From Oopsacas minuta (Eukaryota > Animalia > Porifera): 64,000 nt of DNA. The notes below the pieces were generated by a model. The model was given only the letters and a program-made list of their open reading frames with translations, searched no databases and was not told the DNA's origin. Shown here piece by piece: positions 1-39,386 of this stretch. Numbering within the stretch: the first letter of the stretch is position 1; every line of letters starts with the position of its first letter. The stretch covers positions 449,055 to 513,054 of the forward strand of contig JAKMXF010000022.1 of NCBI GenBank assembly GCA_024704765.1, given 5' to 3'. Both the position numbers and the translations under genes were made by a program.

Positions 1-3000
1 CCAACTGATATTCCCACTTCATTCTCTGCTAATGCCATCTCTCCTAACATCATCAACACAACTTGGGAACCTCCAACAGCTTACCACTTGGGTGGAGTTA
101 TCACTTCCTACACACTGACCTATGCTGGAGAAGAGAGACACTCTCTCTTGAAGACTAAAATCCTGACTGTCCTGAATGGTAGTATTTACATCACTCCTGC
201 TCTGACTGATTTACAAGAAGACACTCATTATTTGATATCTGTTCGAGCTAACACGAGCGTAGGAGCAGGACCTTGGGCTAATCTAACTGCACACACCACT
301 GAAGATGGTTAGTTGATTGTTTTCTGTAATTCGCTTTCTCTATTCTTTTGTAATTGGGTCATGGTCGTAAACTCAATTTCCCTTTTCCATGCTGAATGAC
401 ATTAAGTTCATTTTGTTCTAATTGGAAATTGTTTCCCTGATAGCCACTTCGCATGTTTGTGATTGATTCTTGTATAATCCGAATTTCTATTAGGCGAACT
501 GTAAGTATTTTGAACGCAATAATTATCCTTTTTTGGTGGTGAGAAATATTTTACATTAGCTTGATGATATTTATACATTTTGTGATAACCATGGAAATAC
601 TGTTGGATGTCCAATTTATCAGGTGACATTTATTTCGGCTTATTTAGTTCAAATTGTCCCAGTCCTTAAGTCCGTAGTTCCCAAACTGGGCCATATCTTA
701 TGGACCCCTTGAAGGCCATAGGATCTCAAAACTTTTATTGCAATTTATGGACGGAGGTCAACAGAATGAGAGAAATTTGATATAGGAGGTAGCTGCCATT
801 GGCGATAAGTTTGGAAATTGCTGGCCAAATTGAACCTAATGTGAACCTATTGAGCGGGTTCTACTGCAATTGATCTAAGTTACAGGGTATTTTCAATTAT
901 AAACTTTCAATTAATTACTCTATATATACAAATTTAGTTCCTTCATCATCTGTTCGTAAGCTAACAACATCAACCGAGGGAATGAATGCTACATCCATCT
1001 TTGTTCGTTGGGAAGTACCAATCTTGAATGACCTGAATGGTATTCTAGTCAATTACTCCATCAACTACTCTGGTATAGAGATTGATACAGTTCCCAGAGT
1101 CATCTACTTGTCCAATCCTAATCTAACTAACCAATCTATTACTCTAATCGATCTGGAGGAATACACCACTTACTCTATTAATGTGTCAGCTTACACTAAA
1201 GTGGGTAAAGGTCCTGATGCTATCATCACACAAAGAACCAATCAAAGTGGTGAGTATCTAGTTCATTTTTCGCTATACAAATGTATTTGATCTCAATTTC
1301 TACACTTTCTAGCTCCTTCTGGTGTACCACTTAACCTTACTGCTTATCCTGTCACTGCTACCATAATTAGAGTGGAATGGAATGTTCCTAATATCTATTT
1401 CCAGAATGGAGTTATAACTAACTTTACTATTCGCTATACTAGCCTACTTTTCGATACACATAGGGACTTTGAACGAGTTCTTCCAGTACACGGAAATCAA
1501 ACTGCTTTCAGCTTTATCCTCTCAAACTTGCTGGAGTCTGTTACCTATGAAATCAGTGTTGAAGCTGTAACTATAATGGGAAGTGGTCCTGCTGAAGTTA
1601 TAAAAGCCTCTACCTTCCATACAGGTATTTGAACAACTACACATTACTATAATCTATTTTAGATATTGACCAAATTCAAAAATTTATGAAATTTTCCCCA
1701 ATGATGTCTTTATTGTGATTGAATATAAATTATACTGCACTACGTATCCAGCATTATCAAATTATCATCTAATGTAGCTCCATCAAAGGCACCTCGGAAT
1801 TTGTTGATTCACGAAGTAACCACTACTTCTATCTCTTTAACATGGCAGCCTCCTGAAGACGAATTTCTTAACGGAATTTTGGATAAATATGTATTGACAT
1901 ACCAGGGAGAACTACTAGACAGAATGATGCATGTAGAGGAATTTCCACTTTCTAATGAGGATGATTCGTTCTTACAAGTAGCAGAGCTAACCAATTTGCA
2001 AGAAAACACTACTTATACGATAACTATTGCATTGTTTGCATCTGGTCAGATGAGTCCTCAAATTAAACGTGTTGTCAATACGCTAGACACAAGTAAGTTA
2101 TTGCGGTTTGTACTTTTAGAATATTTTAATATTAATCTATATTTTAGTTCCGAGTGCTACAGTCCAGAACTTAACAGCTGTAAACGCTAGTCAGTTCTCA
2201 GTCCTGATTCATTGGGAAGAAGTTCCATTTCGAGAACAGAACGGAAGAATCGTTTCTTACAACCTTACAACTAACTTTACCCACGCCAATACAACTTCTG
2301 CTCCTGACCTGGCTCCTGATTTCGTTCGACTGAATGGAACTGAGGTTAATTTTTTTCTTCTTAAGAATCTATGGTATGGAGTTAATTTTACAGTGATCGT
2401 AACTCCATATACTCGACATGGAGCAGGTCCTAACATATCTACCACATTTATGCTGGATCAAGGTTAGTCTAATATTCATCTAGAACGATTTTTTTGCTTT
2501 CTCTTAATTTCGCATTTATGTAAATGTTCAATTGTTCCCTTTTCCTATAGAAACAATACCTAGAATAACTTTGCCAGTTAAAGATGAATTCATTACTCAA
2601 TCAGTAAAAGATAATATTAATTATACGAGAGAATGTGTGGCTGAAGCATCGCCTATTCCACTGATCTACTGGTATAAGAATGATGAAGCTGTCCCATTCG
2701 CAAATTCATCTTTTCAAATAACTATCACAAAGAGCGATCTTGAAGAAGGACTTAATGCCTTCGTCTGCAGAGCAATAAACAGACAGGGAACTGTTAATCG
2801 TACTGTAAATATTCTTTTGCTATCTGAATCAGTTGATAATGTTGTAATTGAGGATACGAATGATCAGATTGATAATCAGGAGACTCTAGATGGAGAGCAA
2901 GTGACTAATCTTGCTAACTTGGTAGATTCTGTGATTGCAGAGACTATTAATGATACAATTGATATGAATACTGAAAATAAAACAAATGGAACAGTAAAAA

Positions 3001-7751: not shown

Positions 7752-8608
7752 TTATTTTCTGAACTATTTTATGTATTTTTGATATTTTAAGCTTTGATAT
7801 ATTTTAGAATTTCCTGGTTAAGTCCTGCATGTAATTGTATATTTGCAATTTTCTGTATTTATAAGCTCTCATTAAATTTAATCTAACAAATTACAATTCG
7901 TAATTAAGGGAAATTCTCTACGTTATTCGTCGGCCAAATCAAATAAACTGTGGAAACTGCATAAACCGTCACCCTCATAATACAAATTCACCTACATAAT
8001 CAAACAATTGCTAAACCGACACAATTTGCATGTCCCAACGAGTGTTGGTTAATGCAGGTTCCGCTGTGTTGTATTTTGGGAAGAGATAGATTCTAGTCGC
8101 TAATAATACTTTGGGATCTCGAATAGATGAGCCAGACTGTCGAAGCCTTTCCCGAATCTTGGTGCTTATTCCAACTTTATTCAGTAGCACTTGAGATCTT
8201 AAAATCTGATATTTTACAAATTTCATTCTTTTGATTACAATAATAATATTCTGAGTGATAAGTATTGCAACATAACATTAATCTATTACATTGTAAGGAA
8301 GTCTTGATTACATATAATCAGTGTAATATAATTTGTATTGTATCATCTAAACTGTGTAAAGCTAAAATACCATAGAATGTTAATCAGTTACAACTGAGAG
8401 AAATAAATCAAAGAACACTATTTTAGTTATTTTATCCTTTCTCTTGTACATCCCTCTTTTCAGGTTATTATTATTATCACAAGTAATTGTATCTATTACA
8501 TGTTGAGTTCTATAAATTAGGCTAATTGTAGATATCAGTTAATAAGTGCTTTGTTTTTGAGTGTTACTTACATTCTATTGAAAATTGTCAGAATTATATA
8601 TCTCTAAA

Positions 8609-11600
8609 ATGAGAATTTATAGAATTCTGTTTTTTGTCGTTTTAGCAAATTTTGCTCAAGGTATGTGTGTGTCTCTTAGAATTAAGTAGGATACTTTGCA
8701 TATATTTTGTAGTTCTGAATATTAAACTTCTTAGAATAATTACTGTGCTGACTATTCATTGTTTGCTTTATTGTATTCCTAAATCTAATTATTATTCATA
8801 ATATTGTAGTATTAACATCAGCTGACTCATCCATCCTAAGCTGTGACTTAATTCTAAACGGCTATTGCTATGAACATTTCACTCAAAAGAGTAATTGGAC
8901 AGATGCAAACTCCAGCTGTGTAGATTGGGGAGGTGAATTAGTCAGTCTGTATACACAAACTCTAACTGATTTTCTACCATATCTGATTTCTATCAACACT
9001 GTATGGACTTCTGCAAACAATCTACAAACAAACAACTTCACTCTAGTTTGGAGTAATGGTAGTGAAGTAGATCTGTTACCTGCAGACACTATTATAACAG
9101 AATTTGCTTGTGGTTATGTGTCTGTCTCTGGTGGATTTAATATTTCCATCTGTAACACAACTAGAAGTTACATCTGTACCAAAGAAGGTTAGTTTATCAT
9201 TTTACTCATTTCATTACCTACTATTTCTTTTGATTCTGATCATTTATCCTATTTCTATTCTTGTAGTTCCTTCTGCTGCCCCTAACAACGTTGCAACTAG
9301 TGTAGTTAACTCTACAGCCATTCTCTTAACATGGGATGCTCCAGACCTCTCTGATAGAAATGGAATCCTCCTCTACTACACACTGACTTACTTCGGTGTA
9401 GAATTGGATCAAGTAGTACGAGTAGTTAATTACACCATTGAAGGTTCTGATCACTCCAATCAGACATATGAGTTCTCAGGACTACAGGAATACACTGTGT
9501 ATGAGTTTAGAGTAGCTGCTCATACTAGTTTAGGAGAGGGTGTAACTGCAAGTGTTTCAACTAGGACATATGAATCAGGTGAGTTCACCATTGATGCAGA
9601 AATATTTTAGGGTCAAAGGCGAGCCAGAGTGCGGGACATTGAGTCCTAAAATTGCTTGTGCCCACCAATTCTTTGAATAAAAATGTACTACAGGTCTACA
9701 GCTTTGTGGCACTTATTTTTGCACCTATACCACACCATCGTTCAGTCCGAGCTTCGCCTCTGTTCAAGGTTAACTTACTTGTCTGTAGTTTCATAAACGT
9801 GTATATTTATAGTTCCCACTGCTCAACCATCCAATCTGAATGTACAGATCCTATCGTCTTCAATCTTAATAGCAACTTGGCATGAACCTCCCTTCTCTGA
9901 ACAGAACGGTATACTAACAAAGTACAGAGTAACATGGCGTGGTTTAGAGAGAGATACAGAAGTGAGACTAGAAGACATTCCAGTGAACAGTACCTCCAAT
10001 ACAGCTTACGCATTGACTGATCTAGATGCATACACAAACTATGAAGTGAATGTGAGTAGTTTCACTTCAGTAGGAGCTGGTCCAATCTCTAGTTATACAG
10101 TGACTACTCTACAAGATAGTGAGTTTAATTTTTTGATATATTTGTATTCTAAAATCTAATCTCATTAATTCTTTCTTAGTTCCTTCTTCATCTGTTCGTA
10201 ACCTAACAACATCAACAACAAGCCAGAATGCTACATCTATCTTTGTCAGTTGGATCGTTCCTATACCGAATGATCTGAACGGTATTCTAGTTAACTACTT
10301 CATTAGTTATTTTGGTATAGAAATTGATACAACACTCAGGGTTATATATTTGTCTGATCCGAATGATAATGAATCTATTACTCTAATCGATCTGCAAGAA
10401 TACACAACATATTCTATAAGTGTAGCTGCTTACACAATAGTGGGTAAAGGTCCTGATGCTATCATCACACAAAGAACCAATCAAGATGGTGAGTATTGAA
10501 TAGTCATGATTATATGTATTCTCGTTTCTACCTTGTAATACACGTATAGTAATAGTAGTACTAGTAGTAGATGTCGCATGTACGACTTCTCCTTTCCAGT
10601 GCTAGTGTACTTGGAAATTGGCACATTGTTTGCTTGAGTGTGACTGCCATTAACGTAGAGGTGTTAATTTCCTTTCTTTTTCACCTTTGTGGAAATAGAA
10701 CCATGTTGCACTAACTGCTTGATTCTCCATTTTCTAATTTCTTTTTTGTATTGATTCTATCATTGTATTCATGTTTCCAGCTCCTGTTGATGTTCCTACT
10801 GACTTCAAACTTTATGCTCTTTCTTCCACCATTGTCAACGTTTCATGGGATCCTCCTCCTATTTACTTTCAGAACGGTATAATTACTAACTACACCCTCA
10901 CTTACATGGGTGTTATGAGAGACCGCGAATTGGAGACAATAATTGTTCCTGTTACAAACGGAAGGTACGTAATACCTATACTCACGAGTTTAGAGGAGGA
11001 CACTACTTATGATGTTAATTTGCATGCTAATACTGTTATGGGTGCTGGTCCTGTAGCTAGTAAATCTGTTCGCACACCTGAAGCAAGTAAGTTTTAACTT
11101 TTATTTTAATCCTGCAATTTATTTTGAATTTATTTTGTCTTTTATTCTTTACCAATTCATCAATGTCCGGTTTTATTTGTATTCCATTACAAATGCATTT
11201 AATAGATTATTTCATCATTTTCTCTCAGAAATGATTCGAGATTTCTCTTTTAAAATTCCTCAATTTTAACCATTTACATTCTCTTGTCAAATCTAAAGCT
11301 CGTAACTCTTACCAATCTCTCAGTCAACATTGCAAAAATAATCAAACACAAATTATAATAATATAATTCTAATTTCTCTCTTAGATCCTAAAGGTGCTCC
11401 TAGATATCTTATAGCAACACCGCTCAACAGCACATCTATAATGCTTAACTGGAGTGTACCTAACCCTCAAGATCTTGATGGACAGCTGACTGGTTACCAG
11501 ATTGAATATTTTGGGTTTATAATTGACACTCATAAGAGAACAATTATCATCAATACTAGAAGTCATGATGATCAATCTCAAATATTATCTCCCTTAGAAG

Positions 11601-17600: not shown

Positions 17601-18512
17601 TTCATTTCCAGAGGGATTGTCTTTTTCAAGAATTCATTTAAGTTATCTAACAAAGAGAGTAATGGTGGTGTAGGAGCAGACCAATCGTCAGCACCAAGTC
17701 CTAAGAGGAGCAAATACCATGACCTTTATTTGCAACATATACATCAAATAACTGACAAATCTAATTATGGAATAAACGTAGAATATGGTACAGAAATTGT
17801 AACTGAAGATGGTGTGAAAATTCGTAAAAAATCTATACCCAGTTCGAGCTCAAGCAGGCTTAGTTGTGAACATGCCATTAAGGTTGTAGAGCTGAAACAG
17901 TATTTTGATGATTCGCCAAATTCACCAACTGTACAAGAATTTTTTTCTGAGTCTGATAAAGATTCTATCCCTGTGATACAAGAAAATGATAAACCTGAAG
18001 TAGGACATCCTCTCATGGAACAATACTCCTCTCCACAACGAAAACTAACCCCGCTGCTTGAACCTGATAATGGTGAAATTGAACTATCAAAGGATACTAA
18101 GCACTGGACTAAATTCGAAGAAGATAATGATTTCAATCTTCCGTCTCCTAAAACTATAACCGAGTTTGAACAAACATCCAGTCAACCTCGTGAAAAGAAG
18201 TCAGCTGAAGCCTCAACTTTGGGAAAGGCCAGTTCTCTCGAATACATAGGTACAGAAGATATAAAGCCAAAACAGCGCAGAAGTGCTGATTCACAAGGGG
18301 AACGAATACCAAATACCAGTGTTAGTCATAATATTAAACAATACTCACCCAAAAAAGCTCATAGCACTGGGGCTACTAACGAAAATGATGCTCCAGCTTC
18401 ATTTCCAAACATTGATCCAGAAACTCCAAATAGTTTGAACCCTTTTGATCATTTGGAATCTGAGCAAAACCAAAGTGCAGGAAATACTGTTAATCTGAAA
18501 TTTAACCCATAA
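8609..18512 (+). CDS. Adhesion GPCR paralogue B: signal peptide, CTLD, 12 FN3, Ig, GAIN/GPS, 7TM, ~415-aa tail (~2466 aa)
   Basis: Exons 8609-8660 (MRIYRILFFVVLANFAQ), 8810-9187 (CTLD), FN3 exons 9267-9578, 9813-10118, 10180-10488, 10781-11086, 11385-11687, 11761-12066, 12140-12451, 12522-12827, 12896-13195, 13270-13578, 13636-13947, 14060-14371, then 14566-15179, 15240-15557, 15644-15748, 16077-16590 (GPS CETNHLTSFAVL), 16786-18512. Joined length 7401 nt = 2467 codons, frame consistent. Confidence 0.88.
9207..10495 (+). repeat. Near-identical segment shared with ~27215-28500 (N, Q and S' FN3 exons plus introns)
   Basis: Visual alignment; paired near-identical ORFs 9652/27657, 9807/27812, 9962/27967. 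Confidence 0.9.
9614..9762. mobile_element. hAT-like MITE (~150 bp) in the N-Q intron of gene B
   Basis: Imperfect TIRs CAAAGGCGAGCC / GCTTCGCCTCTG; flanks TTTAGGGT and TTCAAGGT (6/8 match); near-identical copy at 27618. Confidence 0.55.
12140..14032 (+). repeat. Near-identical segment shared with 29179-31071 (five FN3 exons plus introns)
   Basis: Paired ORFs 12919/29958, 13257/30296, 13520/30559, 13722/30761 at a constant offset of 17039. Confidence 0.92.
16065..17260 (+). repeat. 1196-nt near-identical tract shared with 36663-37858 (GPS, 7TM and the intervening intron)
   Basis: Constant offset 20598; identical ORF translations except DKF versus DRF. Confidence 0.95.
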
Positions 18513-25000: not shown

Positions 25001-28000
25001 ACACAACATATTCTATAAGTGTAGCTGCTTACACAATAGTGGGTAAAGGTCCTGATGCTATCATCACACAAAGAACCAATCAAGATGGTGAGTGTTGGTT
25101 AGATAGATGTTTATTGTTTTGTTGATTGTATTTTAACCATTCTTATTGTTTTCAAGCTCCATCTAGCATTCCTACATCCCTTCAAGCTACACCTCTCTCC
25201 CCTACCATCCTCAGCATCACCTGGGAAGATCCTGTCTATATCAATCAAAATGGTATCATCACTACCTACACACTGACTTATGAAGGGATAGAGAGAGACA
25301 CACAGCTACGTACACTGACACTCCCTCAGACTAACCTTTCTCTCACCTGTCATAACTTGGATTCTCTTGAGGAGTATACCACTTACAAGATTTCGGTCTC
25401 AGCCTCTACCACCGTTGGAGCTGGACCTGTTTCAAGAGTTACTGTGAGAACTCTTGAAAATGGTAAGACTTTAGTGATAATGTTGTTTGATCTATCACTA
25501 CTATCAATAATTCATCTTGGGTTTGTCCAATATAATTCAACTATATTCTCCATATGCTTGGTGAAATCCTGATTCGCATACGTATTGAGTTTAGCTAGCT
25601 TATTCACATTATAAAATAATTAATGAAACTCACAGGAATAATTAATAAGTGTGAAAATCGAATTCAGTTCATGCGATATATCTTTCCACGTTTAATTAAT
25701 TTATAATACTTCCTTGATAAACAGGTTAAATACAAATTTTGTAAAATTGCGAAATTCGAGTTCCAAATACCATGCAATAAATACTTTCCTTGCCAACAGA
25801 CAAACCGACAGTTAGACAAATGCACCAATTGAGATCTATTAATAGTGTAAATATTCAAAAATAGGGAATAACTAATTCAGATACTTTTGCAAGTAGTTAC
25901 ATGTCTGAAAATTATGAAATATTGCAATTATAATAACCAGAGTGTAGTTCAAGAGATATCTGCGAGGGAAGTTGAAGTACAGAGCTATGTAATGTATCTA
26001 CCTAAAAATACTGGCCATATATAGTCTGGTTACAATATTATTCCCCGATATCTCATAAACTCTAAATTTTGATATTTGAAATTGTAGAATAGTTAACCAC
26101 ATATGAAACACTTGTGCAGCATAAGGCTGCGGTAGGTACAACCAGCGCCATGCCACATCTCATATCAATCATTTCTATAATTGAAATAGCATTGAGTTAC
26201 TGCTCATTGGAAAACATTTATGTTTATGGCATGAGTAGTCCAACTACCATATCACCACAACTTTATGTACGTATAGATGGTACGGCCTCACCGTACAAAT
26301 TTTGATAGGATAAGCCACTTGAAACCGTATTCATAATATTAGAGCTAGTTTTCAATATAGTCCATTTAATGACTTGAATGGATTTCACTGAGAGGAAACA
26401 CATTTTCTATGGACAATCCATAAATATCAACAAATATCCATAAATATCCATAAATATCTAGACATATCTAGATGATGTACATTGCGCGACTCCTTAATTA
26501 CACCTGAAATGCTTGAATAATTCATTTGTAGTAAAAATACCGATTCTTCCAAAATATATAAACCTATATCATCCTACATTTCTAGTTCCATCATCTACAG
26601 TCCGTAGCCTAACTGCTGTACCTAGTGCCAGTTCCATTACAGTAAGCTGGAATGAACCAATCATGGATGACTTTAATGGTGTACCCACTTACTACACACT
26701 GAGATACTCTGGAGTTAGGTTTCAGACTGAAGAGAAGATAGTTGTAGTCAACTACACTTCTTCTGGAAATGAGATGGTCTCTCTAACTGGTTTAGAGGCT
26801 TACACAGTATATGAGATATCCGTTACTTTGTCTACAAGTATTGGAGAGGGAGATCCTGCAAATATCGATATTCGAACACTGGAGACAGTTCCCACTGGTA
26901 CACCCACCGATCTCAACACTAATGTCCTCTCTGCTAACATCATCAGTGTGACATGGGGTCATCCTATCTCCATTGAACAGAACGGAGTGATCACTGAATA
27001 CACTCTAACCTACAGAGGCGTGGAACGAGACACAGAATCTAGAGAAATAATTCTTCTCTCAAATGAACCATATTTCACTAGTTATGTTATTACTCAATTG
27101 GATGAACATACAACTTATGATATTGATGTTGCAGCTAGCACAATGATAGGAATTGGTCCAATTGCTAGTATTAGGACTATTACAGATCAAGATGGTGGGT
27201 TCAGTCACTACATTTCATTATCTACTATTTCTTTCGATTCTGATCATTTATCCTATTTCTATTCTTGTAGTTCCTTCTGCTGCCCCTAACAACGTTGCAA
27301 CTAGTGTAGTTAACTCTACAGCCATTCTCTTAACATGGGATGCTCCAGACCTCTCTGATAGAAATGGAATCCTCCTCTACTACACACTGACTTACTTCGG
27401 TGTAGAATTGGATCAAATAGTACGAGTAGTTAATTACACCATTGAAGGTTCTAATCACTCCAATCAGACATATGAGTTCTCAGGACTACAGGAATACACT
27501 GTGTATGAGTTTAGAGTAGCTGCTCATACTAGTTTAGGAGAGGGTGTAACTGCAAGTGTTTCAACTAGGACATATGAATCAGGTGAGTTCACCATTGATG
27601 CAGAAATACTTTAGGGTCAAAGGTGTAGCCAGAGTGCGGGACATTGAGTCCTAAAATTGCTTGTGCCCACCAATTCTTTGAATAAAAATGTACTACAGGT
27701 CTACAGCTTTGTGGCACTTATTTTTGCACCTATGCCACACCATCGTTCAGTCCGAGCTTCGCCTCTGTTTAAGGTTAACTTACTTGTCTGTAGTTTCATA
27801 AACGTGTATATTTATAGTTCCCACTGCTCAACCATCCAATCTGAATGTACAGATCCTATCGTCTTCAATCTTAATAGCAACTTGGTATGAACCTCCCTTC
27901 TCTGAACAGAACGGTATACTAACAAAGTACAGAGTAACATGGCGTGGTTTAGAGAGAGATACAGAAGTGAGACTAGAAGACATTCCAGTGAACAGTACCT

Positions 28001-31000
28001 CCAATACATCTTACGCATTGACTGATCTAGATGCATACACAAGCTATGAAGTGAATGTGAGTAGTTTCACTTCAGTAGGAGCTGGTCCAATCTCCAGTTA
28101 TACAGTGACTACTCTACAAGATAGTGAGTTTAATTTATTGATATATTTGTATTCTAAAATCTAATCTCATTAATTCTTTCTTAGTTCCTTCTTCATCTGT
28201 TCGTAACCTAACAACATCAACAACAAGCCAGAATGCTACATCCATCTTTGTCAGTTGGATCGTTCCTATACAGAATGATCTGAACGGTATTCTAGTTAAC
28301 TACTCAATTAGTTATTTTGGTATAGAAATTGATACAACACTCAGGGTTATATATTTGTCTGATCCTAATGATAATGAATCTATTACTCTAATCGATCTGC
28401 AAGAATACACAACATATTCTATAAGTGTAGCTGCTTACACAATAGTGGGTAAAGGTCCTGATGCTATCATCACACAAAGAACCAATCAGGATGGTGAGTA
28501 TCCTTTGCTTTCTTTTCATGATTTGTTGTGATAACATTGATTTATGAGTGACTTATTGTTTAGTTCCAACTGATATTCCCACTTCATTCTCTGCTAATGC
28601 CATCTCTCCTAACATCATCAACACAACTTGGGAACCTCCAACAGCTTACCACTTGGGTGGAGTTATCACATCCTACACACTGACCTATGCTGGAAGAGAG
28701 AGACACTCTCTCTTGAAGACTATAATCCTTACTGTCCTGAATGGTAGTATTTACATCACTCCTGCTCTGACTGATTTACAAGAAGACACTCATTATTTGA
28801 TATCTGTCCGAGCTAACACAAGTGTAGGAGCAGGACCTTGGACTAGCCTAACTGTACACACCCCTGAAGATGGTTAGTTGGTCTAGGATTTTTCTGTTTT
28901 CCTATTTTGTTAAAAGTTGTGAGCTAGTTGTACCCAGATGATGAACTACGTTTATCAATTTTTCATTTGCTAAATTCACATTCTTCAAATGTTCTTTTCC
29001 TATTATCCGTCAAGGACGATATTGAGTTGACACTAGTTAGGGCAGTCGGTAGCGGATGGTCCACAACACTATTTAATGTGCCCGCCCCCATTGGCTCATT
29101 TTATCCTCGATTTGGTACCCTAATGTATTTACAAGCTAGCTTAAAAGATAATTTCTTTATATATTTGCTGTTATTTAGTACCTTCTTCTTCTGTTCGTAA
29201 CCTAACAACATCAACAGAAGATCAGAATGCTACATCGATCTTTGTCAGTTGGGAAGTACCAATCTTGAATGACCTGAACGGTATTCTAGTCAATTACTCC
29301 ATCAACTACTCTGGTATAGAGATTGATACAGTACCCAGAGTCATCTACTTGTCTTATCCTAATCTGACTAACCAATCTATTACTCTAATCGATCTGGAGG
29401 AATACACCACTTATTCCATCAATGTGTCAGCTTACACAATAGTGGGTAAAGGTCCCGATGCTATCATCACACAGAGAACCAATCAAGATGGTGAGTATCT
29501 ATTTCATAATTTGCCAGATCGCCTATTGTGTAAATTTATATCTTGTTATTGTGTATATAGTTCCATCTGCTTTTCCTACGAATTTCCTCTTAAAGGCTAT
29601 TTCACCAACTATCGTTAAAGTATCATGGGATCCTCCTCCCATAAACGATCAAAACGGTGTAATTACAACTTATACACTCACATACATGGGTTTAGAAAGA
29701 GACCAAGAATTAGAAACAATGATTATAACTGTCTTGAATGGTACATATGTTCTTCCAATACTAATCGGTTTAGAAGAAAATACAAACTATTTCGTTACTC
29801 TGAATGCTAATACAAGCGAAGGAGCTGGTCCTATCACTAATTTATCTGTTCTAACTCTACAAAACAGTAAGTTGCGAATTATGCAAATTCCATTTCTTCT
29901 AGCTAACCAATTCTTCTCATATTTTCTATTTTAGTACCAAAGGGAGCTCCACGGAACTTGATTCTAACCTCAACTGATACAAGTATCCAGATAAACTGGT
30001 CAGTTCCTATAATTGACGATCTAGATGGAAATTTGACAGGTTATCTAGTCACATACCATGGCTTTGAGATTGATACTCACGAAAGAATGATACAATTCAA
30101 TACTTCAAGTGATGATAACCAAACACTAACATTGAGTCCTCTTGAGGAATACACTGACTATTTTATCTCTGTACATGCGATTACTGTGGGGGTGGGTCCT
30201 TCTTTGTCTACTACATTCCGCACTTTACAAGCAAGTAAGTTATCTATCACTGCAAATCCAGAGTATACTATTGTAGCAATTGTAATAATGTAAATATGTC
30301 TTATTCAGGGCCTAGTGCTGTTCCCACTGACCTCACCGCATCCCCAATATCTGCTCGTGCAATTTACATAACCTGGTCTCCTCCGCCGTTTATACATCAG
30401 AATGGAATAATAACTGAATACACTCTCACCTACCAAGGAGTAGAGAGAGATATAATGAAAAGAAATATATCAATACCAACTGCTACAAGTCGTTCTACTA
30501 CTTCTCTCACTGTGACAGATATTGAAGAAGATACTGACTTTACCATAGCCATTAGAGCTCACACAATTAAAGGACCGGGTCCTATCACTACAGTATCAGT
30601 GCGTACTCTTGAGAGTGGTGAGTAATTATAGAGTAAATAATTTGAGAGACTGTATTTATATTTTAACTTAACAGAGCCTTCATCTCCTGTACGAGACTTA
30701 ACAACATCAACAACAAGACAGAATGCTACATCCATCTTTGTTAATTGGGAAGTACCAATCTTGAATGACCTGAATGGTATTCTAGTCAACTACTCCATCA
30801 ACTACTCTGGTATAGAGATTGATACAGCACCCAGAGTCATCTACTTGTCCTATCCTAATCTCACCAACCAATCTATTACTCTAATCGATCTGCAAGAATA
30901 CACTACTTACTCCATTAATGTGTCAGCTTACACGAAAGTGGGTAAAGGTCCTGATGCAATCATCACACAAAGAACCAATCAAGATGGTGAGTTAATCTAA

Positions 31001-34000
31001 TACTTCTTCTTATGCATCATAGGCTGTGTATATCGATGGCTATTGTATAATCGTTATATTTTCATTTCTAGTACCATCTGGACCTCCACTCAATCTTACC
31101 GCCTTTCCCATCTCTCCAACTGATATTCTTGCTGAGTGGAAGGTACCTGATACTTATGAACAAAACGGTATAATTGTCCTGTTTACAATCATCTTCTCAA
31201 GTCTAAATTCTGACGCACATGACGACATCAAGCGGACCCTTCCTGTTTCAGACAACAGCACAAAATTCTGTTTTCTGTTATCAGGATTAGAAGAAGGTAC
31301 TACTTATAGTATTCGTGTATCAGCTAGCACATCAGTTGGTGAGGGTCCATTCAGCAATACTCAAGCAAGTACCTTCAATACAGGTATGTTTGTTAGTACG
31401 TGTATTGTTATTTCCAGAATTAGTCACTCTTTATTATTCGATAATTTAACAGAGTGTATCTTATGATTTGTATGTATTTAGGTCCGACAAGAGCACCACG
31501 TAATTTCTTTGCATACGAAATTACAGCTATTTCAATTTCTGTTTCTTGGGATGCACCAGAAGATGAAGACATTAATGGAATATTAGATAGATATGAACTA
31601 ACATATTCTGGGAAAGATCTCGATACACATCTTCATGTTGAGTATTTCGAAGACAATCTCTATCATTTGCAAACAGCTGAATTAACTAATTTACAGGAAA
31701 ATACCATCTACACTATACAAGTATATTTGTTTTCTTCCGGTATCAGGAGTCCACCGGCCACGATGATTGTTAACACTCTACAATCAGGTAGATAACCTAT
31801 ATTAGTATATTTCTCATTGTTCTGTTATTTATTTACTTTTATTTCAGCTCCCAATGAAACAGTTCAGTACTTAAACACTACCGAAGCAAGTCCTTTCGCT
31901 ACTCTCATCACCTGGGAACCTCCTCCGTTCCCTTTCCAAAATGGACCTATTATAAGTTATGAAATTCTGACAGTATTCTCAGATCCGTATACAAACGTGA
32001 CAGGTTTATCAAGGAACTTTACATGGCTCAATTATACAGACAGCACAGAGATATTGCTTAAGGAACTGAGACCTGGAGTAAACTTCAGTTCAACTGTTAT
32101 ACCAATTAACCAGGAAGGATCTGGTCCACCAATCTCAACAATATTTAGTATGATCGCAGGTAAGTAGTATTAGTGCAACTCCTATAGGGAGATGTCATAT
32201 AGATATATAGATATATATAGCATGGAGATAGGGCGACGCACTTATGTTCACGTAATCCGATTGTTATGAGAATTGGTATGTGGTAGGACATCCTTAATAC
32301 GAAATCATAATAGGTATATTGATATATTGTGAAAATTATTTATTTTCCACAGAAACTATCCCAGAAATCTTAATTCCTGAATCTGATGTATTCATTACTG
32401 TACAAGAGGCAGTTGTAGATGAATTCAGTAGATACTATGAGTGTGTAGCAAGTGGTAATCCTATACCACTCATTCACTGGATCAGGAATGATGAAACGAG
32501 ATTGGATGCTTTTAACATTACGATAAATGGGACTTCATTAGTAAGAGGGAGTAATATATTCAGATGCGTTGCTTCGAGTAGAAATGGTGAAGACTCTCTT
32601 GTCGTTTCAGTCATTCTAGTTTCTGAGGAAATTGATGTAAGCGCGATCAGTGATACTCAAGAGCTAGTTAGCAATCAGACTAGCCTTAACGAAGAGGAAA
32701 CAGATGACCTCTCCTCTCTCATCCGGACTAGCGTACAATCTGTTGATTCTAATAGAATGAATAACAGTGCCAACTCTACAAACAGTAATTCTACTGCTAA
32801 TTCTACCGAAATTGTAGATGCGGTTTCTGGTCTATACTCTGACGTGATTAGATTAACAGAGATGGGAATCTCGCGGAACACATCAGTTAACCTGTTCAGT
32901 ACTGGAGGTGAGCTTGTCAGAGCTTCTCAAAATGACCAAGGTATAGCAGAAAATCAAGAAATCCCATCTTTATCAGGGGTGAGTATTCCTTTTGAGGGAA
33001 ATAAATTCCTTTTGATTAACAAATAATATTCTAGAATATATGCTTGTTTCCATTACAAAATGTAACCAACACTTACAGAGCTCTAGCTATCTCTGTTAAT
33101 GGAATAGAAGATTTGGGAATTAAATTTATCGAAAATCTCAACACAACAGAGCCAAGTGTTATTGATGATCCTGAAAGCAGTATATTCTTCGAAGCACAAG
33201 AATTGAATGAAACCGTTTATGATAATTCAACTATGACCTTTCCAATGACAAATCGAACTACAAATTCCTCTGAACAAGTTTCTGTACCTGGCAGTTTACT
33301 CCAAGCATTGATGAATTCGAGTAACAACAGTGGTATTGCTCCTAGGATTACAGTAAGTTAAGAGTTGAATTTATCTGTTCAAGGAAATTATGACAATGAG
33401 AAATTGGTCTGGTGTAATTTGTCGGTGTAAGCACTGTAAGGTGACCTAAGGTATTACATTTATTATGGAGAGAAGGGATTATCCATGTGTTCATCTGAGA
33501 CTATTTCCGCCTCGGACCGTTGCATTTATGTCAAGAATTGCAGTAAATTTATCGATGTCGTATGATGGGCTAATTAGGTAGGATTTCCATATACAATAAT
33601 TCAGTTTATACGTATATGATTACTTTTAGATTTCTACAACTTTTATTGGAGAAAAACAAGAAAATATTAGCAGGATACTTGTGTTCAGTATTCAAGAAAG
33701 AAACTCAACAAAACTGATAGAGTTCTTTGGAAATAGTGTAAGTTATTTGGGAAATTACTCAATTTAATACTAACTGTATAATCACGAAGATAATAATATT
33801 CTCAGTAGAAATCTAAATATTAACAGAATTTATTACAGGTAGACTTGAGATTCGCTCAGTTCTACATTATCCCCTCCTACTCTAGCGTCATTAGATCTTA
33901 TAGATTCCATAGTATGCTCATCACTGCGTTTGAGTCCGTATGAATTTGAGTTGTTTTCATTGTTATTGTAGAACTTTGTTTCATCTTTCTGCATTTTTGA

Positions 34001-37000
34001 AGTGAAACAACAGATCAACACAATAGCTAATATTACGATTATAATTAGTAGGATTATTACTATGAAGGATAGAACGCCTGTTGTAATCACGAATATATTA
34101 CCAAAACTCCCTGGAGTATCATCAGTTGCATTACTGGCTGCAGGTTTGGGTGTGGGAGTTTGTGTATTAGTGCTAGTAGTGGTGGTTACTGTAGTAGTAG
34201 TATTGGCCATTGTAACTGTAGTAGTATTGGCCATTGTAACTATAGTGGTATTGGCCATTGTAACTGTAATAGTATTTGTATTGTTTGAGATTTGTACTAG
34301 CAATTGCGTTAGATTTGATCCTGTTACAAGATCTAATTTGTTTTCAGTAACAATACGAACTTCGCTCAATAGCAATAACATAGAGTCTGTCGGATAACTG
34401 AACTCAATTTTTAGAAAGCTAACATTAAATACATTTTCTCCATCAAATTCCAGCAACGTATCATTCTGGTCATATACCTTAAACGCATTATCCATTGCTC
34501 CAATATCTTCGATGTCTCCCCGCCAAATTCTAGTGATTAAGTTAACGATTAAGTATTTATTATTGAATAGAAGTATTATGTAAGGATTAGGTGTTCCACA
34601 GACTGACCAACCAAAATACTCCTCTGGAGAGAGTAACGGAGTATCACCTAGACAAAATATAATTGTATAAATCGGGGTTGACACTAGGTAGTAGCTTTGT
34701 TGGGTAATTTCTTGTTCGTTATAGTAGCTTAACTGAGTTTTTACTGTACTGACTATACTATAACTATAGTACCAGGGTTCTAAAATGGTTAACTGACTTT
34801 CTTAGTCAGTAGGTGGGTACATACACGTATAAATGTGTTTGTTCTCCTGTACACACCTTTGGAAATTAAGACTCGTAATTTGGCATCTATACTCGTAGTG
34901 ATATTTAGTTGCATATCTGACATTTGAAAATTTCTAATGTGTATATTTTCACACCTTTTAGGTGATTAATCATATTCCCATACATTTCTATGTAAATTCA
35001 AAAGAATGCTAGAAATTAGGTTTCAACATGTTATTATGGGCTCAACAGAGACATATAAGGGTAACAAGTACGCTGAATCCGAATTTGGCATTTTCAAAAT
35101 TTTTTTTTTTACTATAAAGTAAACAGATAATTGAATATCAAATATACGTAGAGACTTGCTCTTAACGGCTATATATGGTATTTGAGTACGCTGAATACGA
35201 ATTTCGCATTTTCAAGTTTCTCATATGTAAGTTTATTGTTAATTATGAATATAAAGTAAACAAATTATCCAAATTTCTAAAAATTGGTAGAGACATTCTC
35301 TCAACAGACATGTGGGGTACCAAATTACCTCGGCAGAGGCGGTGAATTGAGATTTTTTCCTTATCAAAATATACTATGCTAGTATGATATAACTTAATCA
35401 GAATTACCTAATGTTCCATCTGCCAGTACACCAACTCCACCACTCAATAACCCCATAGACTCTACGCCTGTGTAATTAGAATCCTCATGTTGATATCCGT
35501 CTATTAGAGCATCTGTAGATGGCATTATGTATTGCAGTAGCACCCCGTTATTGATATCAGGCTCGTCAGGATTAGCAAGATCTCTTCTACAGCCATAGAA
35601 CTCTACTCTTAAACATACATAATTTGTAACATTAGGATCTGAGGGCTGAGAAGTCTCAATAATCTAGGAACAATTATTATCTTACGTATATCATTATTCT
35701 TTATATCTATCCTTGAGTAAATTACTTACTTGTAACTTAATTTCGTCCACCGCTACTGGAGGAAAGTTTATTTTTATTAATCTCCCTCTGTTATTGAGTC
35801 CCAGCTGTTTGAGGTTTAGAATGGGATCTCCCTCTGGGTCTATATCATCCGTATACGGAGCTTGTATAGACACATACTCTGTCATGTTCATTTTACTGCC
35901 TGTTGTAACTTTAAGCTTTGTAATGTAACTGTTATCACTAAGTAAGGGAGATCCACATGAGCTACCAGGTTGGAATCCATTTTGTATTCCTATCCCTGTT
36001 AACCAGAAATGAGGTGTGCCAGGAGCTTCTTCGTGCAAGACAAACAGGGGAGAAATGTATTCTAATTCATTTCCTCCATATCTCAACGTCCAAGCATTGG
36101 TACTACCGATTAATGGGAGTTCAGATGCTAGGTTTGCTTCGGGAGCTCCGTTATTGTTAAGAACAAAACCTCTCAAAAGATTATTGTCTTTTATAACTTT
36201 CTCTAAAAGTGCTTCGTTACATTCTGGCGCTCCGAATGGCGTAATAAGGAAGCAACCAATTATTATCAAAAGCTGATAATACAAACAAAACACAGTCATT
36301 GATATTTTATTAATTAGGCGGCAATATGAAGGAGGTGATAGTTATTTTCGAATAAATTGAATTTATACAATCTTTGGGGAATCATGAGGAATGCAACGAG
36401 TTGACATGTAGAACAGAAGGGAATCTATATCTGCCTCTGTTGAACTGATTCTAGTTTAGAACCAGAAAATTAGAAATCAAATATTATACTGTCTGTCAGG
36501 TGAAACCAGGAATTCACAGATTTATGAAACATTTTGAAATGTTGGATATAGACTATTATAGATTGTACTTTTAAGTGTTTATTTAGGAAATTTGTATAAA
36601 TTACGGATTATGCCCGTTTGGATGTAATAGAATTCATAAATATACGAGTAAGCGAGTGTATGTGTTTCCTTTAGATCAATATAACACTTGAAACCACTCC
36701 AGCTCCAAAAGGGTTTGAACATGTGTGTGTTGCACTAAATAGAACTACAAATACCTGGTCAACAGTTGGTGTTAAGATGGTTAAAGAAGATGATGAGATG
36801 AACACTACAACTTGTGAAACAAACCATTTGACTAGCTTTGCTGTATTGATACAAGTTAAACCAGTTGAAGTGTCCTTTGTTGAGAAAATAATCGCTTCAG
36901 TTTTCTCCTACTTCTTGCTGAGCATATCCTTTTTATTCCTACTGGCTACACTTATACTCTTCTGTATAGGTGGTAGGACATTCCTAAAGGTTGAAATGAA

Positions 37001-39386
37001 CATATTATACCTTAACTATGGTATTGCCCTCACTTGTGCTAACGGTCTCTTCCTTTTCGGAGTGGAACTTGGAAAATTCCATCCCGTCTCCTGCACCATC
37101 GTAGCACTATTCCTTCACTACTTTTGGAGTACTGTCTTTTCTTGGAGTCTCTGCAACGCAATACTCATATTTTATAGATTATTCATTGGTGAGTTATATC
37201 TTTGGGGATGCATATTTGATATTTCTAACATTCCCCATTCCCCACTTATAATTTCAAGGAGTAGAGGTTCGTTTCTATCGAAATGAACCCAAATCGACCA
37301 AAATCGACCAAAATTCCCCCACTTATAAAGGTTGTACTACTGTACACATCAAATTTCTCATTTTACAATTTGTCCATATTTAGGTATTTTGAGCAACAGA
37401 AAGATTTGGCCATATCTAGTCTTCTTCGGGTGGTTATCTCCCTTACCTCTGGTAATAATATCAGTTAGCATAAAACAATCTGCTTACAGTAACCATCTAG
37501 CTGGCTATTGCTGGCTTTCAAATGAAGATGGACTCATATGGGCCTTCCTGGGTCCAGTATTCCTCGTATTAATCCTGAATGCAATCATACTCACTACAAG
37601 TGCAATTCGTATTGGCACAGCCAGGAAGAATCTTGACAAAGTAAAACAATTGCGTGTTGCACTATTGAGTGCATTCATTCTAACTCCAGTACTGGGCATG
37701 CCTTGGATCGTATCATTTGCTAAAATAATAACAGTGGGTATAGAAGATGAGCTAGCATTGGCTATACTAGACAGGTTCATAGATTGGGTATTCATTTGTT
37801 TGAATGCTCCAGCAGGAGTGGTATTCTTTATAATCATTTTCAAGAGATTCAGGGAACACCGACAATCACTGAGACAAAAGGGAACAGCCGGAACCATCAG
37901 CGTTACCTCTCCCTCTGCATCAGACTTCAGCAAATTCAGGAAAATACACCAATCCACTTCCGCTGCTGATGCTTCGTTTACTGAAACTACCTCAATAACT
38001 GGTTACAAGATTCGTCATACTAATAGCAATGCATCTATGATTTCCCAGAATTCTAACTCTTGCACCAATCTGATGAAAGGAACTAGTACTAGTACTACGA
38101 GAAATAAATCTCTTTTCGATGACAAAGATAACATTGGTATATACAGCACATTAGATTCAGAATATATGCATGGTTTAAGGCAAAAAAGGACTTTTAGCAC
38201 TCCTAATCGTTCATCACTACATCCAGATCGAGCTTACGAGGTCTCTTCCCTGCGAGATCTCTCCAGGGTGAATAGCAGGGACGGAATCGAAATGGAGACT
38301 ATTCGGGAGAGGAAAGTGAGTAATTCTTGCGATCTTACTTATGATAACCCATACGAGCAGGAGAGTGACAATGTTAAATTAACAGCTGATAATGATGATG
38401 ATGGAACGAAAAATTTCTTTTCCAGAGGGATTGAATTCCTCAATAATTCGTTTAAGACTTTCAGAGATAAGAGTCTAGACACAGAAGCGAACAAATCTTC
38501 AACACCAACCCCCTATACTGAATCAGATAGTAAGTATCACAATATTTACTTGGAACACTTGCACAAGGTAACTGAAAGAACACAATCTAATCCAGAAATG
38601 TCCGTAGAAGATGCTCCTGAACCTACAACTTTGGGTGGTGAAAAAATCCGTAGAAAATCTACCCCCAGCTCATACCGGCTTAGTTGTGAACACACCATTA
38701 AGGTTAATGAGCTGAAACAGTATTTTGATGATACAGCACCTAAATTACCTATTGCAAACCAACAGTTAAGCATTAGTGAGTCTGATAAGGATACTATCCC
38801 TGTGATACAAGAAAATGATAAACCTGAAGTAGGACATCCTCTCATGAAACAATACTCCTCCCCGAAACGAGAACTAAACCCGCTACCGGAACCTGAGAAG
38901 AATGAAATTGAACTATCAATAGATACGAAGCACTCGATTAACTCCCAGGAAGATAATGTCTTCAATCTTCCATCTCCTAAAGCTATATCCACGTTTGAAC
39001 CAATATCCAGTGAACCTCGCCAAAAGATGTCATCTGAAACTGTTTTGAGGAAAACTAATTCTCTCGGCTACATAGGCACAGATGATATAAAGCAGCGCAG
39101 AAGTACTGATGCACTAGGAGAACAAAATATCTCAAAGGTTGGTCACCATGTGAAATGTTTTGAGGATATTATCAGGACTAATAGTGCTGCTACTCAGCCC
39201 GCCCCTCCTCCTAAGAGAGCACATAGCACTGCAAGTATAAACCGAAATAAGATAGATGTTCCATCTTCAATGGCAAGTTTTGATCCAAACATACCGGAAA
39301 TCGCTAGTTTAAACTCTATTGATAATTCGCAATCCGAGCAACACCAAAAGCGATGTAGTGTTGATGACCAGATAACTAACCTTTGA
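19021..39386 (+). CDS. Adhesion GPCR paralogue C: signal peptide, CTLD, 26 FN3, Ig, GAIN/GPS, 7TM, ~510-aa tail (~3998 aa)
   Basis: Exons 19021-19072, 19228-19605, FN3 exons 19669-20001, 20071-20355, 20789-21097, 21167-21472, 21862-22470, 23068-23676, 23753-24064, 24412-24717, 24779-25087, 25157-25462, 26586-27194, 27271-27582, 27818-28123, 28185-28493, 28564-28872, 29179-29490, 29561-29866, 29935-30234, 30309-30617, 30675-30986, 31072-31383, 31482-31787, 31848-32159, then 32353-32978, 33035-33352, 33630-33737, 36675-37188, 37384-39386. Joined length 11997 nt = 3999 codons; ends ITNL. Confidence 0.85.
19773..19790 (+). repeat. Coding CAG/CAA microsatellite (Q6) in the first FN3 domain of gene C
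   Basis: cagcagcaacaacaacaa within WIPPQYPSYTQQQQQQRDEQLTSY. Confidence 0.85.
24102..24370. mobile_element. Different MITE-like element (~269 bp) in the other N-Q intron of gene C
   Basis: Imperfect TIRs CATTGGCGGATCCA / TGGATCTGCTAGTG (11/14 match); GC-richer than the host intron; no clear TSD. Confidence 0.5.
27618..27767. mobile_element. hAT-like MITE (~150 bp) in an N-Q intron of gene C
   Basis: TIRs CAAAGGTGTAGC / GCTTCGCCTCTG; 8-bp flanks TTTAGGGT and TTTAAGGT (7/8 match), consistent with an 8-bp TSD. Confidence 0.62.
33833..36299 (-). CDS. Nested antisense gene: DDR-like single-pass membrane protein (discoidin DS, DS-like, Thr-rich stalk, TM, short tail, no kinase), ~546 aa
   Basis: Exons 36299-35730, 35663-35408, 34647-33833 (GT-AG, phases 0 and 1; 1641 nt in frame). 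Hydrophobic N-terminus. Exon 2 is absent from the ORF track and reads IIETSQPSDPNVTNYVCLRVEFYGC...LLQYIMP...EDSNYTG...GVGVLADG. Exon 3 contains EEYFGW, LLLSEVRIV and a long hydrophobic TM. Confidence 0.8.
34194..34265 (-). repeat. 3 x 24-bp coding tandem repeat (VTMANTTT/I) in the stalk of the nested gene
   Basis: Unit gtagtagtattggccattgtaact repeated three times. Confidence 0.9.
34777..34959 (+). repeat. Dispersed repeat, copy 1 (homologous to 39583-39739)
   Basis: Shared GTTCTAAAATGGTT...CACACCTTT...AATTTGGCAT...ACTCGTAGTGA...TTTCTAATG...TATATTTTCACACCTTTT. Confidence 0.75.
35040..35330 (+). repeat. Degenerate ~120-140-bp tandem repeat (2 units plus a partial) in the nested gene's intron
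   Basis: AGTACGCTGAAT(C/A)CGAATTT(G/C)GCATTTTCAA, TATAAAGTAAACA and GTAGAGAC recur in order. Confidence 0.7.

Follow-up and report, generated by a model that had tools for sequence, protein, structure and literature searches.

Tandem receptor genes of a glass sponge

The window, i.e., the whole stretch of 64,000 nucleotides that was analysed, belongs to contig JAKMXF010000022.1 of Oopsacas minuta (Hexactinellida). Three co-oriented adhesion GPCR genes, referred to as A, B and C, are arranged in tandem on its plus strand, to which all coordinates refer unless stated otherwise. They have one order of parts in common, namely signal peptide, CTLD, (FN3)n, Ig-like domain, GAIN/GPS and 7tm_2; of gene A, only the 3' part lies in the window. 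The in silico models of B, C and the A part contain no internal stops, their introns are all of the GT-AG type, and in B and C the predicted reading stays open with matching phases from the signal peptide through the 7TM region, giving one polypeptide. All FN3 exon junctions are GT..AG and of phase 1, and the GPS/TM1-3 exon has a length of 514 nt in A, B and C alike. The gene models thereby confirm the initial annotation, which had described three co-oriented paralogues with one exon skeleton and this 514-nt exon; its counts of 26, 12 and at least 5 FN3 domains were reproduced with an FN3 profile built from the window's own sequence, which detected 43 domains on the plus strand, 26 of them in C (19665-32155), 12 in B (9257-14367) and 5 in the part of A in the window (1-2464).

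The 3' part of gene A (1..7751), whose 5' start lies upstream of the window, was modelled on the basis of profile, splice and Pfam evidence. It comprises five FN3 exons (2-307, 938-1249, 1313-1624, 1778-2092 and 2148-2462), an Ig/GAIN-A exon (2551-3170), two GAIN exons (3246-3539 and 3648-3812), the GPS/TM1-3 exon (3882-4395) and a last exon (4471-7751), which encodes TM4-7 and a tail of about 900 amino acids. The stalk of A consists of at least five FN3 domains and probably of more than 30 overall. Gene B (8609..18512) is complete in silico, with 19 exons and 2466 amino acids: a signal-peptide exon (8609-8660) and a CTLD exon (8810-9187) are followed by 12 FN3 exons (9267-14371), an Ig/GAIN-A exon (14566-15179), two GAIN exons (15240-15557 and 15644-15748), the GPS/TM1-3 exon (16077-16590) and the last exon (16786-18512). 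The likewise complete in silico model of gene C (19021..39386) has 30 exons and 3998 amino acids. Its signal-peptide exon (19021-19072) and CTLD exon (19228-19605) precede 23 FN3 exons with 26 FN3 domains (19669-32159), an Ig/GAIN-A exon (32353-32978), two GAIN exons (33035-33352 and 33630-33737), a GAIN-to-GPS intron of 2937 nt between 33737 and 36675, the GPS/TM1-3 exon (36675-37188) and the last exon (37384-39386).

Nested in this long intron of C is an antisense gene (33833..36299, minus strand; 546 aa in the NCBI annotation), which a related species carries in the corresponding intron. In the NCBI annotation, gene C is divided into three models, namely a Lectin_C/fn3 product of 3169 aa, the antisense gene and a 7tm_2 product of 804 aa; this division can be ascribed to the antisense gene sitting in the intron. 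The 3169-aa model ends at about 33767 and corresponds to the first 28 exons of the present model (3160 aa) plus around ten read-through residues, and the 804-aa model begins at 36777. If this annotation of distinct genes were correct, the CTLD-FN3-Ig part would be secreted as a protein of its own, and the 7TM product would be a distinct receptor without an ectodomain. This is improbable, however, as the end of the 3169-aa model consists of about ten codons of intron right behind a GAIN exon, and the corresponding exon of A and B joins the 514-nt GPS exon by a phase-0 splice, across introns of 69 and 328 nt, respectively. Furthermore, a Met inside the GPS exon serves as the start of the 804-aa model, which truncates the GAIN domain and lacks a signal peptide, the related species keeps the long intron and the antisense gene with intact flanking exons, and a paralogue on another contig, P0022, is annotated as a single CTLD-FN3-Ig-7TM protein. 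NCBI models of A or B were not found in searches with the last exons of C and A and the CTLD of P0022, within the length limits of these searches. Since the annotation breaks the longest gene, ectodomain surveys on that proteome will miss this architecture.

Receptor core, ectodomain and known relatives

The 7tm_2 domain (PF00002) is split across two exons in A, B and C (E-values of 1e-6 to 1e-19); the 514-nt exon covers positions 6-107 of the profile and the last exon positions 111-233. Directly before TM1, the GPS (PF01825) was matched above the cut-off in all three genes. The GPS cleavage consensus with the putative tethered agonist (Stachel), HL|TSFAVLIQ, as read from the sequence and the Pfam GPS match, is located at 4032-4061 in A, 16227-16256 in B and 36825-36854 in C, in each case in the context C-x-T/E-x-HL|TSFAVLIQ; C356, C385, H389 and F393 are invariant across 26 homologues. 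Judged by 7tm_2, the GPS before TM1 and the long modular ectodomain, the gene products are classed as adhesion GPCRs (class B2). For the putative GAIN domain, the Pfam GAIN models gave no match on the window exons. An AF2 model of P0022:880-1290, which is 31% identical to and collinear with B, reached a pLDDT of 57.5, and its nine best PDB matches in Foldseek were all GAIN domains of adhesion GPCRs (E 6e-7 to 1.5e-4), accompanied by Ig matches. For the Ig/GAIN-A exon of B itself, the alignment was shallow and the structure model poor overall, at a pLDDT of 56, with the four helices at about 70. The cytoplasmic tails of A, B and C are long, predicted to be disordered and contain one conserved motif, YHNIYLEHLH (38535-38564 in C, with equivalents at 17715-17744 in B and 5847-5876 in A), which, from the sequence comparison, is a signature of this receptor family.

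Pfam matches above the cut-offs in the window genes are Lectin_C, fn3, GPS and 7tm_2. Pfam Ig matches stayed below the cut-off, and the Ig hallmarks C...W...C-x-A are invariant in eight of eight homologues. The CTLDs of B and C matched Lectin_C above the cut-off, with E-values of 7e-8 and 1e-7. None of the sugar/Ca2+ motifs EPN, QPD and WND is present in the B and C CTLD sequence; the domain thus counts as a CTLD in the wider meaning of the term and is probably no classical Ca2+-dependent carbohydrate-binding lectin. Three exons of C encode two FN3 domains each, and nearly every other FN3 domain has its own symmetric phase-1 exon. The stalk contains many potential N-glycosylation sites and is predicted to be heavily N-glycosylatable. 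Read by their motifs, two FN3 classes alternate strictly along the stalk; average-linkage clustering, which was also tried for the two classes, merely separated the divergent C2/k types. The 26 FN3 domains of C include a 99%-identical six-domain unit, the copy number of which is that of the hybrid SPAdes assembly and could be mis-assembled.

Long FN3 arrays are not known from mammalian adhesion GPCRs, in agreement with the initial annotation. FN3, Ig and CTLD as such have been described from other holozoan adhesion GPCRs, and a paralogue of this architecture is already in GenBank. FN3 and Ig-family domains are known from the N-termini of adhesion GPCRs of the demosponge Amphimedon queenslandica (Krishnan et al. 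2014, PMC4302439); these receptors are likewise of class B2 with 7tm_2 and GPS and belong to sponge expansions without a clear bilaterian orthologue. In contrast to the Oopsacas family, the text of that paper makes no mention of a C-type lectin domain. FN3 and Ig domains are also known in adhesion GPCRs of filastereans, choanoflagellates and metazoans (PMC12716839). Amphioxus adhesion GPCRs carry C-type lectin domains (Nordstrom et al. 2008, PMC2246102), and these as well as the Owenia fusiformis protein CAH1784857.1 (P0135) likewise combine a C-type lectin and Ig with GPS and 7tm_2; however, they have no FN3 stalk, are 31% identical in the GPS/TM1-3 region and are not orthologous. The closest counterpart is P0022 of O. 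minuta itself (KAI6660509.1 / UniProt A0AAV7KHC3, 'hypothetical protein LOD99_14093'), which has the same part order and is collinear with gene B over 1384 amino acids. It differs in its two CTLDs, about six FN3 domains, HL|S instead of HL|T and the absence of the tail motif NxYLEHLH.

The nearest relatives of A, B and C are other hexactinellid sequences, followed by a starfish ADGRL3-like protein with 36% identity. NCBI names the 7TM piece of C after ADGRD1/GPR133, which likewise combines a 7tm_2 core with a GAIN/GPS region that holds a tethered agonist. The ectodomain of vertebrate ADGRD1/GPR133 is pentraxin/laminin-G-like. This identity, together with orthology to the vertebrate group V receptors, was rejected, since every ectodomain exon of the present genes is CTLD, FN3 or Ig/GAIN, and since the nearest named non-sponge match is the ADGRL3-like protein, ADGRD1 is a mere best-hit label. 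A long array of one domain is also found in ADGRV1/VLGR1, a single-gene adhesion GPCR with a very long Calx-beta repeat array in its ectodomain, which uses Calx-beta and not FN3. A, B and C represent a known receptor class in a new form and not a new kind of system; their lectin-like tip, borne by a stalk in which 12 to more than 26 FN3 domains follow one another, adds an extreme ectodomain design to the adhesion GPCRs.

Exchange of FN3 modules within and between the genes

At a nucleotide identity of at least 90%, the FN3 modules fall into 13 families. Nine of the 12 modules of B match C at 92-100% (8/12 at 96-100%), and three FN3 exons are found in B only. The homology blocks between B and C are 93-99.4% identical, reaching 100% in single modules, and include the introns; in the shared blocks, exons are identical to 97.36% and introns to 97.26%. 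Within C, a tandem six-domain unit (modules a-l-e-m-c-d, domains C3-C17; 20789..28493) is repeated, whose copies are 93-99.7% identical at the nucleotide level, again including introns. A similar arrangement is known from kringle IV-2 of LPA, where a tandem near-identical multi-exon unit including introns varies in copy number among individuals by unequal recombination; individual variation is known for LPA.

Two sites in B retain traces of such rearrangements. Intron 2 (9188..9266) is chimeric: its first 24 or so nucleotides resemble the post-CTLD intron of C and the rest resembles the intron of C before FN3 C15, the join lying at a TCATTT/CATTT microhomology. Read against C, this intron records the removal of 14 FN3 domains. 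In the intron before FN3-12, two B/C homology blocks overlap (14016..14038), which, by the same comparison, marks the in-frame loss of two exons equivalent to C24-C25 (31078-31805 in C). Overall, the arrays of B and C keep a collinear order in which symmetric phase-1 exons have been duplicated in tandem or deleted. Thus, the initial description of near-identical exon modules common to the paralogues and of arrays remodelled by recombination agrees with the 13 families, the chimeric microhomology intron, the in-frame two-exon deletion and the shared blocks including introns, whereas the term "shuffled" overstates the case for collinear modules of two strictly alternating classes, which differ by duplication and deletion.

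Since each FN3 domain tends to occupy a symmetric phase-1 exon, unequal crossing-over, intron-to-intron deletion and gene conversion alter the arrays in whole in-frame modules. Module copies, both inside B and C and from one gene to the other, are 93-100% identical, compared with about 72-82% (aa) for the same module types in the related species, and in the domain tree, as by identity, module copies group by species within shared module types. This clustering indicates concerted evolution, in which DNA exchange within and between the genes keeps the FN3 repeats near-identical. The locus illustrates clearly, in a natural setting, that domain exons of symmetric phase 1 allow in-frame rebuilding of receptor length and homogenisation by recombination.

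The assembly of the related sponge (ERZ25071281) contains an A-type gene, a short gene at the B position and a long gene at the C position, followed by ADSL, PLB, adh_short, NHL and XPO7; the exons flanking the antisense gene in its C-position gene are all intact. Hence, short and long forms adjoin in at least two glass sponges. This species has its own B/C blocks of 92-97% identity. The long and short classes and a proximal nine-domain stalk are kept between the two species, whereas the module content of B differs. In a tree of the last exons, Oopsacas B and C form a group of their own, whereas the genes of the other species fall into distinct B-type and C-type clades, and tail-only BLAST for Oopsacas B was ambiguous with respect to the B-position genes of other species. 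The grouping would reflect either an independent duplication or an old conversion.

The O. minuta assembly is a hybrid SPAdes assembly of Illumina and corrected PacBio reads from sponge tissue (PMC10280926). Given this origin and an identity of up to 99.4-100% in the blocks common to B and C, introns included, the two could be haplotypes of a single gene misplaced in tandem, or a repeat of it that was collapsed or expanded, and 12 versus 26 domains would then be allelic or spurious. A word depth of about twofold in the shared blocks relative to the unique parts fits two haplotypes as well as two loci. Logan contigs from three runs, however, bridge the B tail (about 80% identical to that of C), the intergenic DNA and exon 1 of C. 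The two genes also differ in upstream sequence, in exon 1, of which each has its own diverged version, in their tails, with about 50% amino acid identity among the cytoplasmic tails, and in the three B-only FN3 exons. Moreover, in the independent long-contig assembly of the related sponge, a short gene followed by a long one likewise lies between the A-type gene and ADSL. A haplotype mis-assembly, which the initial annotation had named as grounds for refutation, is therefore very improbable. The reading of the locus as three intact tandem co-oriented adhesion GPCR genes of a glass sponge, whose FN3 stalks are remodelled and homogenised by exchange, is considered likely. One sequencing run, X5, stems from another organism with 95-96% identity and yielded scraps only.

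Proposed function

The A, B and C proteins may act in the manner of other adhesion GPCRs. The stalk length would determine how far away the CTLD tip binds its partner, a protein or the matrix; ligand binding or force could uncover the tethered agonist in the GAIN/GPS region, whereupon the 7TM core would signal via heterotrimeric G proteins; eight G-alpha genes have been reported for O. minuta (PMC10280926). A tuning of reach by stalk length has indirect support, as the related species also keeps a short and a long gene at the same positions, and a mechanosensory role might be envisaged. The finding alone opens no long-standing question, and reach, mechanosensing and self/non-self recognition are candidate functions.

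The last of these would imply that individuals differ in the length and module content of their arrays, for allorecognition or microbe recognition. Polymorphic FN3 arrays and CTLD receptors of unequal length would then form a recognition system coupled directly to G-protein signalling, which would serve a syncytial animal without most other metazoan signalling receptors. Both the individual variability and the coupled system are improbable. The arrays are prone to recombination, the tip is a CTLD, the module content of B is unlike between the two species, and one demosponge adhesion GPCR is induced by microbial patterns (PMC6208332). The module pair B8-C20 shows 11 non-synonymous differences and one synonymous difference; this excess, calculated by hand, is not significant, and the pooled pN/pS between near-identical modules, a comparison of paralogues, is 0.42, which speaks against diversifying selection as a general pattern and leaves the self/non-self candidate of the initial annotation unsupported. 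Recognition is also at odds with the conservation of the length classes and the nine-domain stalk across species, and the CTLD exon, being 99.7% identical between B and C, is not hypervariable.

Gene models and receptor core

Position 1 of the window corresponds to position 449055 of contig JAKMXF010000022.1 (GCA_024704765.1). Its G+C content of 35-38% and its introns of 55-100 nt are consistent with the compact genome of a glass sponge (Hexactinellida). Three tandem adhesion GPCR (aGPCR) genes lie on the + strand: A (3' part only, 1-7751), B (8609-18512) and C (19021-39386). Lectin_C, fn3, GPS and 7tm_2 were detected above the Pfam cut-off in the expected open reading frames, and Ig families scored below the cut-off only. 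Iteration of an FN3 profile over + strand fragments of the window itself identified 43 FN3 domains (A, five; B, 12; C, 26), which are exactly the numbers of the initial annotation (at least five for A). All FN3-FN3 exon junctions have a GT donor and an AG acceptor and are in phase 1; three exons of C each encode two FN3 domains. Models were assembled from a signal-peptide exon (52 nt per gene, encoding MRIYRILFFVVLANFAQ- in B and MRIYRILLFALLVHFAE- in C), a CTLD exon, FN3 exons, Ig/GAIN exons and two 7TM exons. In silico, B and C yield complete open models of 19 exons (2466 amino acids) and 30 exons (3998 amino acids), respectively, and ten exons of A lie within the window. The GPS/TM1-3 exon is 514 nt long in all three models, as described before; the original observation is thus real and well measured.

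The GPS of A, B and C reads HL|TSFAVLIQ, a cleavage consensus with a Stachel-like sequence, and the C, W and C-x-A of the Ig-like domain are invariant in eight of eight homologues. The region between Ig and GPS has no Pfam GAIN match. P0022 (KAI6660509.1), an Oopsacas paralogue from another contig, is collinear with gene B over 1384 amino acids (31% identity). In an AF2 model of P0022 residues 880-1290, the top nine PDB matches are all aGPCR GAIN domains, from BAI3, latrophilin 1 and 3, CELSR1, GPR110, BAI2, GPR56 and GPR97, with contactin and Robo Ig domains next. The CTLDs of B and C contain neither EPN/QPD nor WND, which makes classical sugar binding unlikely. N-x-S/T sequons number 73 in the ectodomain of B and 106 in that of C. 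The cytoplasmic tails are poorly conserved save for one motif, N-x-Y-[LMI]-[EQ]-H-[LI]-[HNQ], which is present in A (YHNTYLEHLH, 5847-5876), B (YHDLYLQHIH, 17715-17744), C (YHNIYLEHLH, 38535-38564) and 19 of the 20 ENA homologues checked, and was not found in three other Oopsacas aGPCRs checked. This motif may serve as a docking site.

The NCBI Oopsacas minuta protein P0001, "Adhesion G-protein coupled receptor D1-like isoform X2", matches the last exon of gene C with 100% identity. NCBI splits gene C (19021-39386) into a Lectin_C/fn3 protein of 3169 amino acids, an antisense gene and an 804-amino-acid "7tm_2 ADGRD1-like isoform X2", which begins at an internal Met within the GPS exon, so that surveys based on the proteome will not recover the complete architecture. 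The NCBI ectodomain model provides a second gene prediction, which agrees with the first 28 exons of gene C (3160 amino acids) plus about ten read-through residues. The antisense gene (33833-36299, - strand, 546 amino acids in NCBI) is nested in the GAIN3-to-GPS intron and is kept in the corresponding intron in a related species (ENA assembly ERZ25071281), with 61-70% amino acid identity across both large ORFs. Its C-terminal part resembles a membrane protein with one transmembrane pass and a T-rich stalk (weak Pfam matches to TMEM154/ECSCR); its N-terminal ORF has no Pfam match.

Relatives of the receptor family

With the GPS/TM1-3 exon as query, an exhaustive phmmer search (E 0.001 or better) returned 1283 proteins. 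The nearest were ENA sequences and other Oopsacas "ADGRD1-like" proteins, and the first named non-sponge match was a starfish ADGRL3-like protein (36%). P0022 shares the architecture of A, B and C with about six FN3 domains. P0053 (L003/L005 contig, assembly ERZ20067936), an apparently intronless, FN3-rich aGPCR encoded by one uninterrupted ORF of 3255 amino acids, is built as EGF-(fn3)20-EGF-7tm_2 and is 37% identical to gene B in GPS/TM1-3, and a protein of Owenia has the order Ig-(Lectin_C)3-GPS-7tm_2. Amphimedon aGPCRs with fn3 and Ig domains are reported in PMC4302439, FN3 is among the ectodomain parts common to aGPCRs of filastereans, choanoflagellates and metazoans (PMC12716839), and C-type lectin domains occur in amphioxus aGPCRs (PMC2246102). 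The parts of this ectodomain and their pairwise combinations are therefore already known. Of the initial reading, the gene class and the role of recombination stand; shuffling is overstated, and so is novelty against non-mammalian aGPCRs, for which fn3, Ig and C-type lectin domains had been reported. No published description was found of the CTLD-tipped design with 12 to 26 FN3 domains, its tandem family or its homogenisation, and the Oopsacas genome paper does not discuss these receptor genes.

In a related sponge species (ENA assembly ERZ25071281), the gene at the B position reads CTLD-2FN3-CTLD-10FN3 and that at the C position CTLD-2FN3-CTLD-24FN3, so that these ectodomains may carry two lectin-like domains, compared with one in Oopsacas. 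Both genes start with a duplicated CTLD-FN3-FN3 cassette (locus L006, 2350-4066 and 12262-14470), the copies of which are about 95% identical in nucleotides. A short and a long receptor thus stand side by side in both species, although the module content of B differs, and this pair suggests, indirectly, that stalk length may matter.

Module order and the separateness of B and C

Clustering of the FN3 exons at 90% nucleotide identity or above gave the module orders f b... in A, c d a... b g h i j k in B and.. a l e m' e m c d a l e m c d a f b g h i j.. k in C. The layout is collinear, and "shuffled", as the ectodomains had been called, was an overstatement. B corresponds to C without the first 14 domains and without C24-C25, three old diverged domains replacing the f of C; as assembled, a 99%-identical six-domain unit occurs in C about two and a half times. 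Intron 2 of B is a chimera of the post-CTLD intron of C and the intron before C15, with a TCATTT microhomology at the join, and the loss of C24-C25 in B lies between two acceptor regions that overlap by 23 nt. Both junctions, together with near-identical exon modules of common types shared between the genes, bear out a receptor family remodelled by recombination. FN3 domains of the "D-x-N-G" and "Q-N-G" classes alternate without exception in A, B and C (even positions were read by eye where the regular expression was too strict). Recombination between like modules would preserve this alternation automatically, and a structural constraint is then not required.

Self-comparison showed B/C blocks of 93.2-99.4% identity, introns included, which raises the question of whether B and C are haplotypes of one gene, mis-assembled in tandem. 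Word depth is about doubled in the 99% blocks (about 200 vs 90-105), which is consistent with two loci but, on depth alone, also with two haplotypes. However, exon 1 and the upstream DNA differ between B and C, three FN3 exons are found in B only, and the tails share only about 50% protein identity. Moreover, Logan contigs, whose construction from raw reads does not depend on the published assembly, run from the B-specific tail through intergenic DNA into the C-specific first exon in three genomic runs (17988-19240 in a 1253-nt contig of X3; 18232-19246 in X1 and X2), all three from one sample, possibly the one behind the assembly. The same gene order is found on a 1.53-Mb contig of the independent assembly ERZ25071281, which is assigned to a related species because its ADSL and phospholipase B are 93% and 81% identical to the window proteins: an A-type gene (1080-amino-acid last exon), a short gene and a long one whose antisense ORFs occupy the same intron as in gene C, and then ADSL, phospholipase B, adh_short, NHL and XPO7. 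In the second assembly, ERZ20067936, an A-type gene is followed by a CTLD-(FN3)20-Ig-GPS-7TM gene. Given the junction contigs and the shared order, mis-assembly of haplotypes is highly improbable, and B and C are treated as separate genes.

Downstream of C, ADSL(-), phospholipase B(+), adh_short(+), NHL-like(+) and XPO7(-) occupy 40229-50091 in the window and 12828-21830 in locus L002 of the related assembly, an order that provides a useful anchor for locating the locus in further glass sponges. Contigs of run X5 (record of 2024, another organism) are 95-96% identical to 15194-15565 (GAIN exon region of B) and 19149-19581 (exon 1/CTLD region of C); a close relative carrying this receptor family has thus already been sequenced at low depth. 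An element of about 45 nt in an intron of B (15804-15848) reaches word depths of about 5400-8500, compared with about 100 for unique DNA, in the three genomic runs; it is abundant in X5 too, many contigs stop on it, and it probably represents a dispersed repeat of high copy number or the end of a MITE.

Similarity between genes and among repeats

In the shared B/C blocks, exons are 97.36% and introns 97.26% identical, which indicates that the similarity is recent and not the product of selection. The individual blocks are 99.0, 98.4, 97.4, 93.2 and 99.4% identical, and the tails about 80% in nucleotides over a part only; this spread suggests tracts that differ in age. Across 24 paralogous exon pairs, Nei-Gojobori counting gave a pooled pS of 0.068 and pN of 0.029 (ratio 0.42), and no sign of a hypervariable recognition surface was seen in these pairs. 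The pair B8-C20 (12522-12827 vs 29561-29866) has 11 non-synonymous differences and one synonymous difference, which is not significant by a binomial estimate; it forms a local patch of amino acid change among neighbouring modules that are 99-100% identical.

In the related species, the B- and C-position genes share blocks of 92-97% identity, and the internal repeats of C are 96-98% identical. A tree of 81 FN3 domains drawn from the two species has both represented in every module type, with the copies of each type clustering by species; protein identity in types a, c, e, l and i is 89-99% within and 72-82% between species. Both species have the repeat layout e m c x a l e m ... followed by f a g h i a, two diverged domains and k. 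Thus, the repeats most likely predate the species split and have been homogenised since, as expected for concerted evolution. In the membrane-proximal module k, B and C are 68% identical in the related species, compared with 97% in Oopsacas, and both Oopsacas copies adjoin the C copy of the related species in the tree, which points to a C-to-B conversion of this module in Oopsacas.
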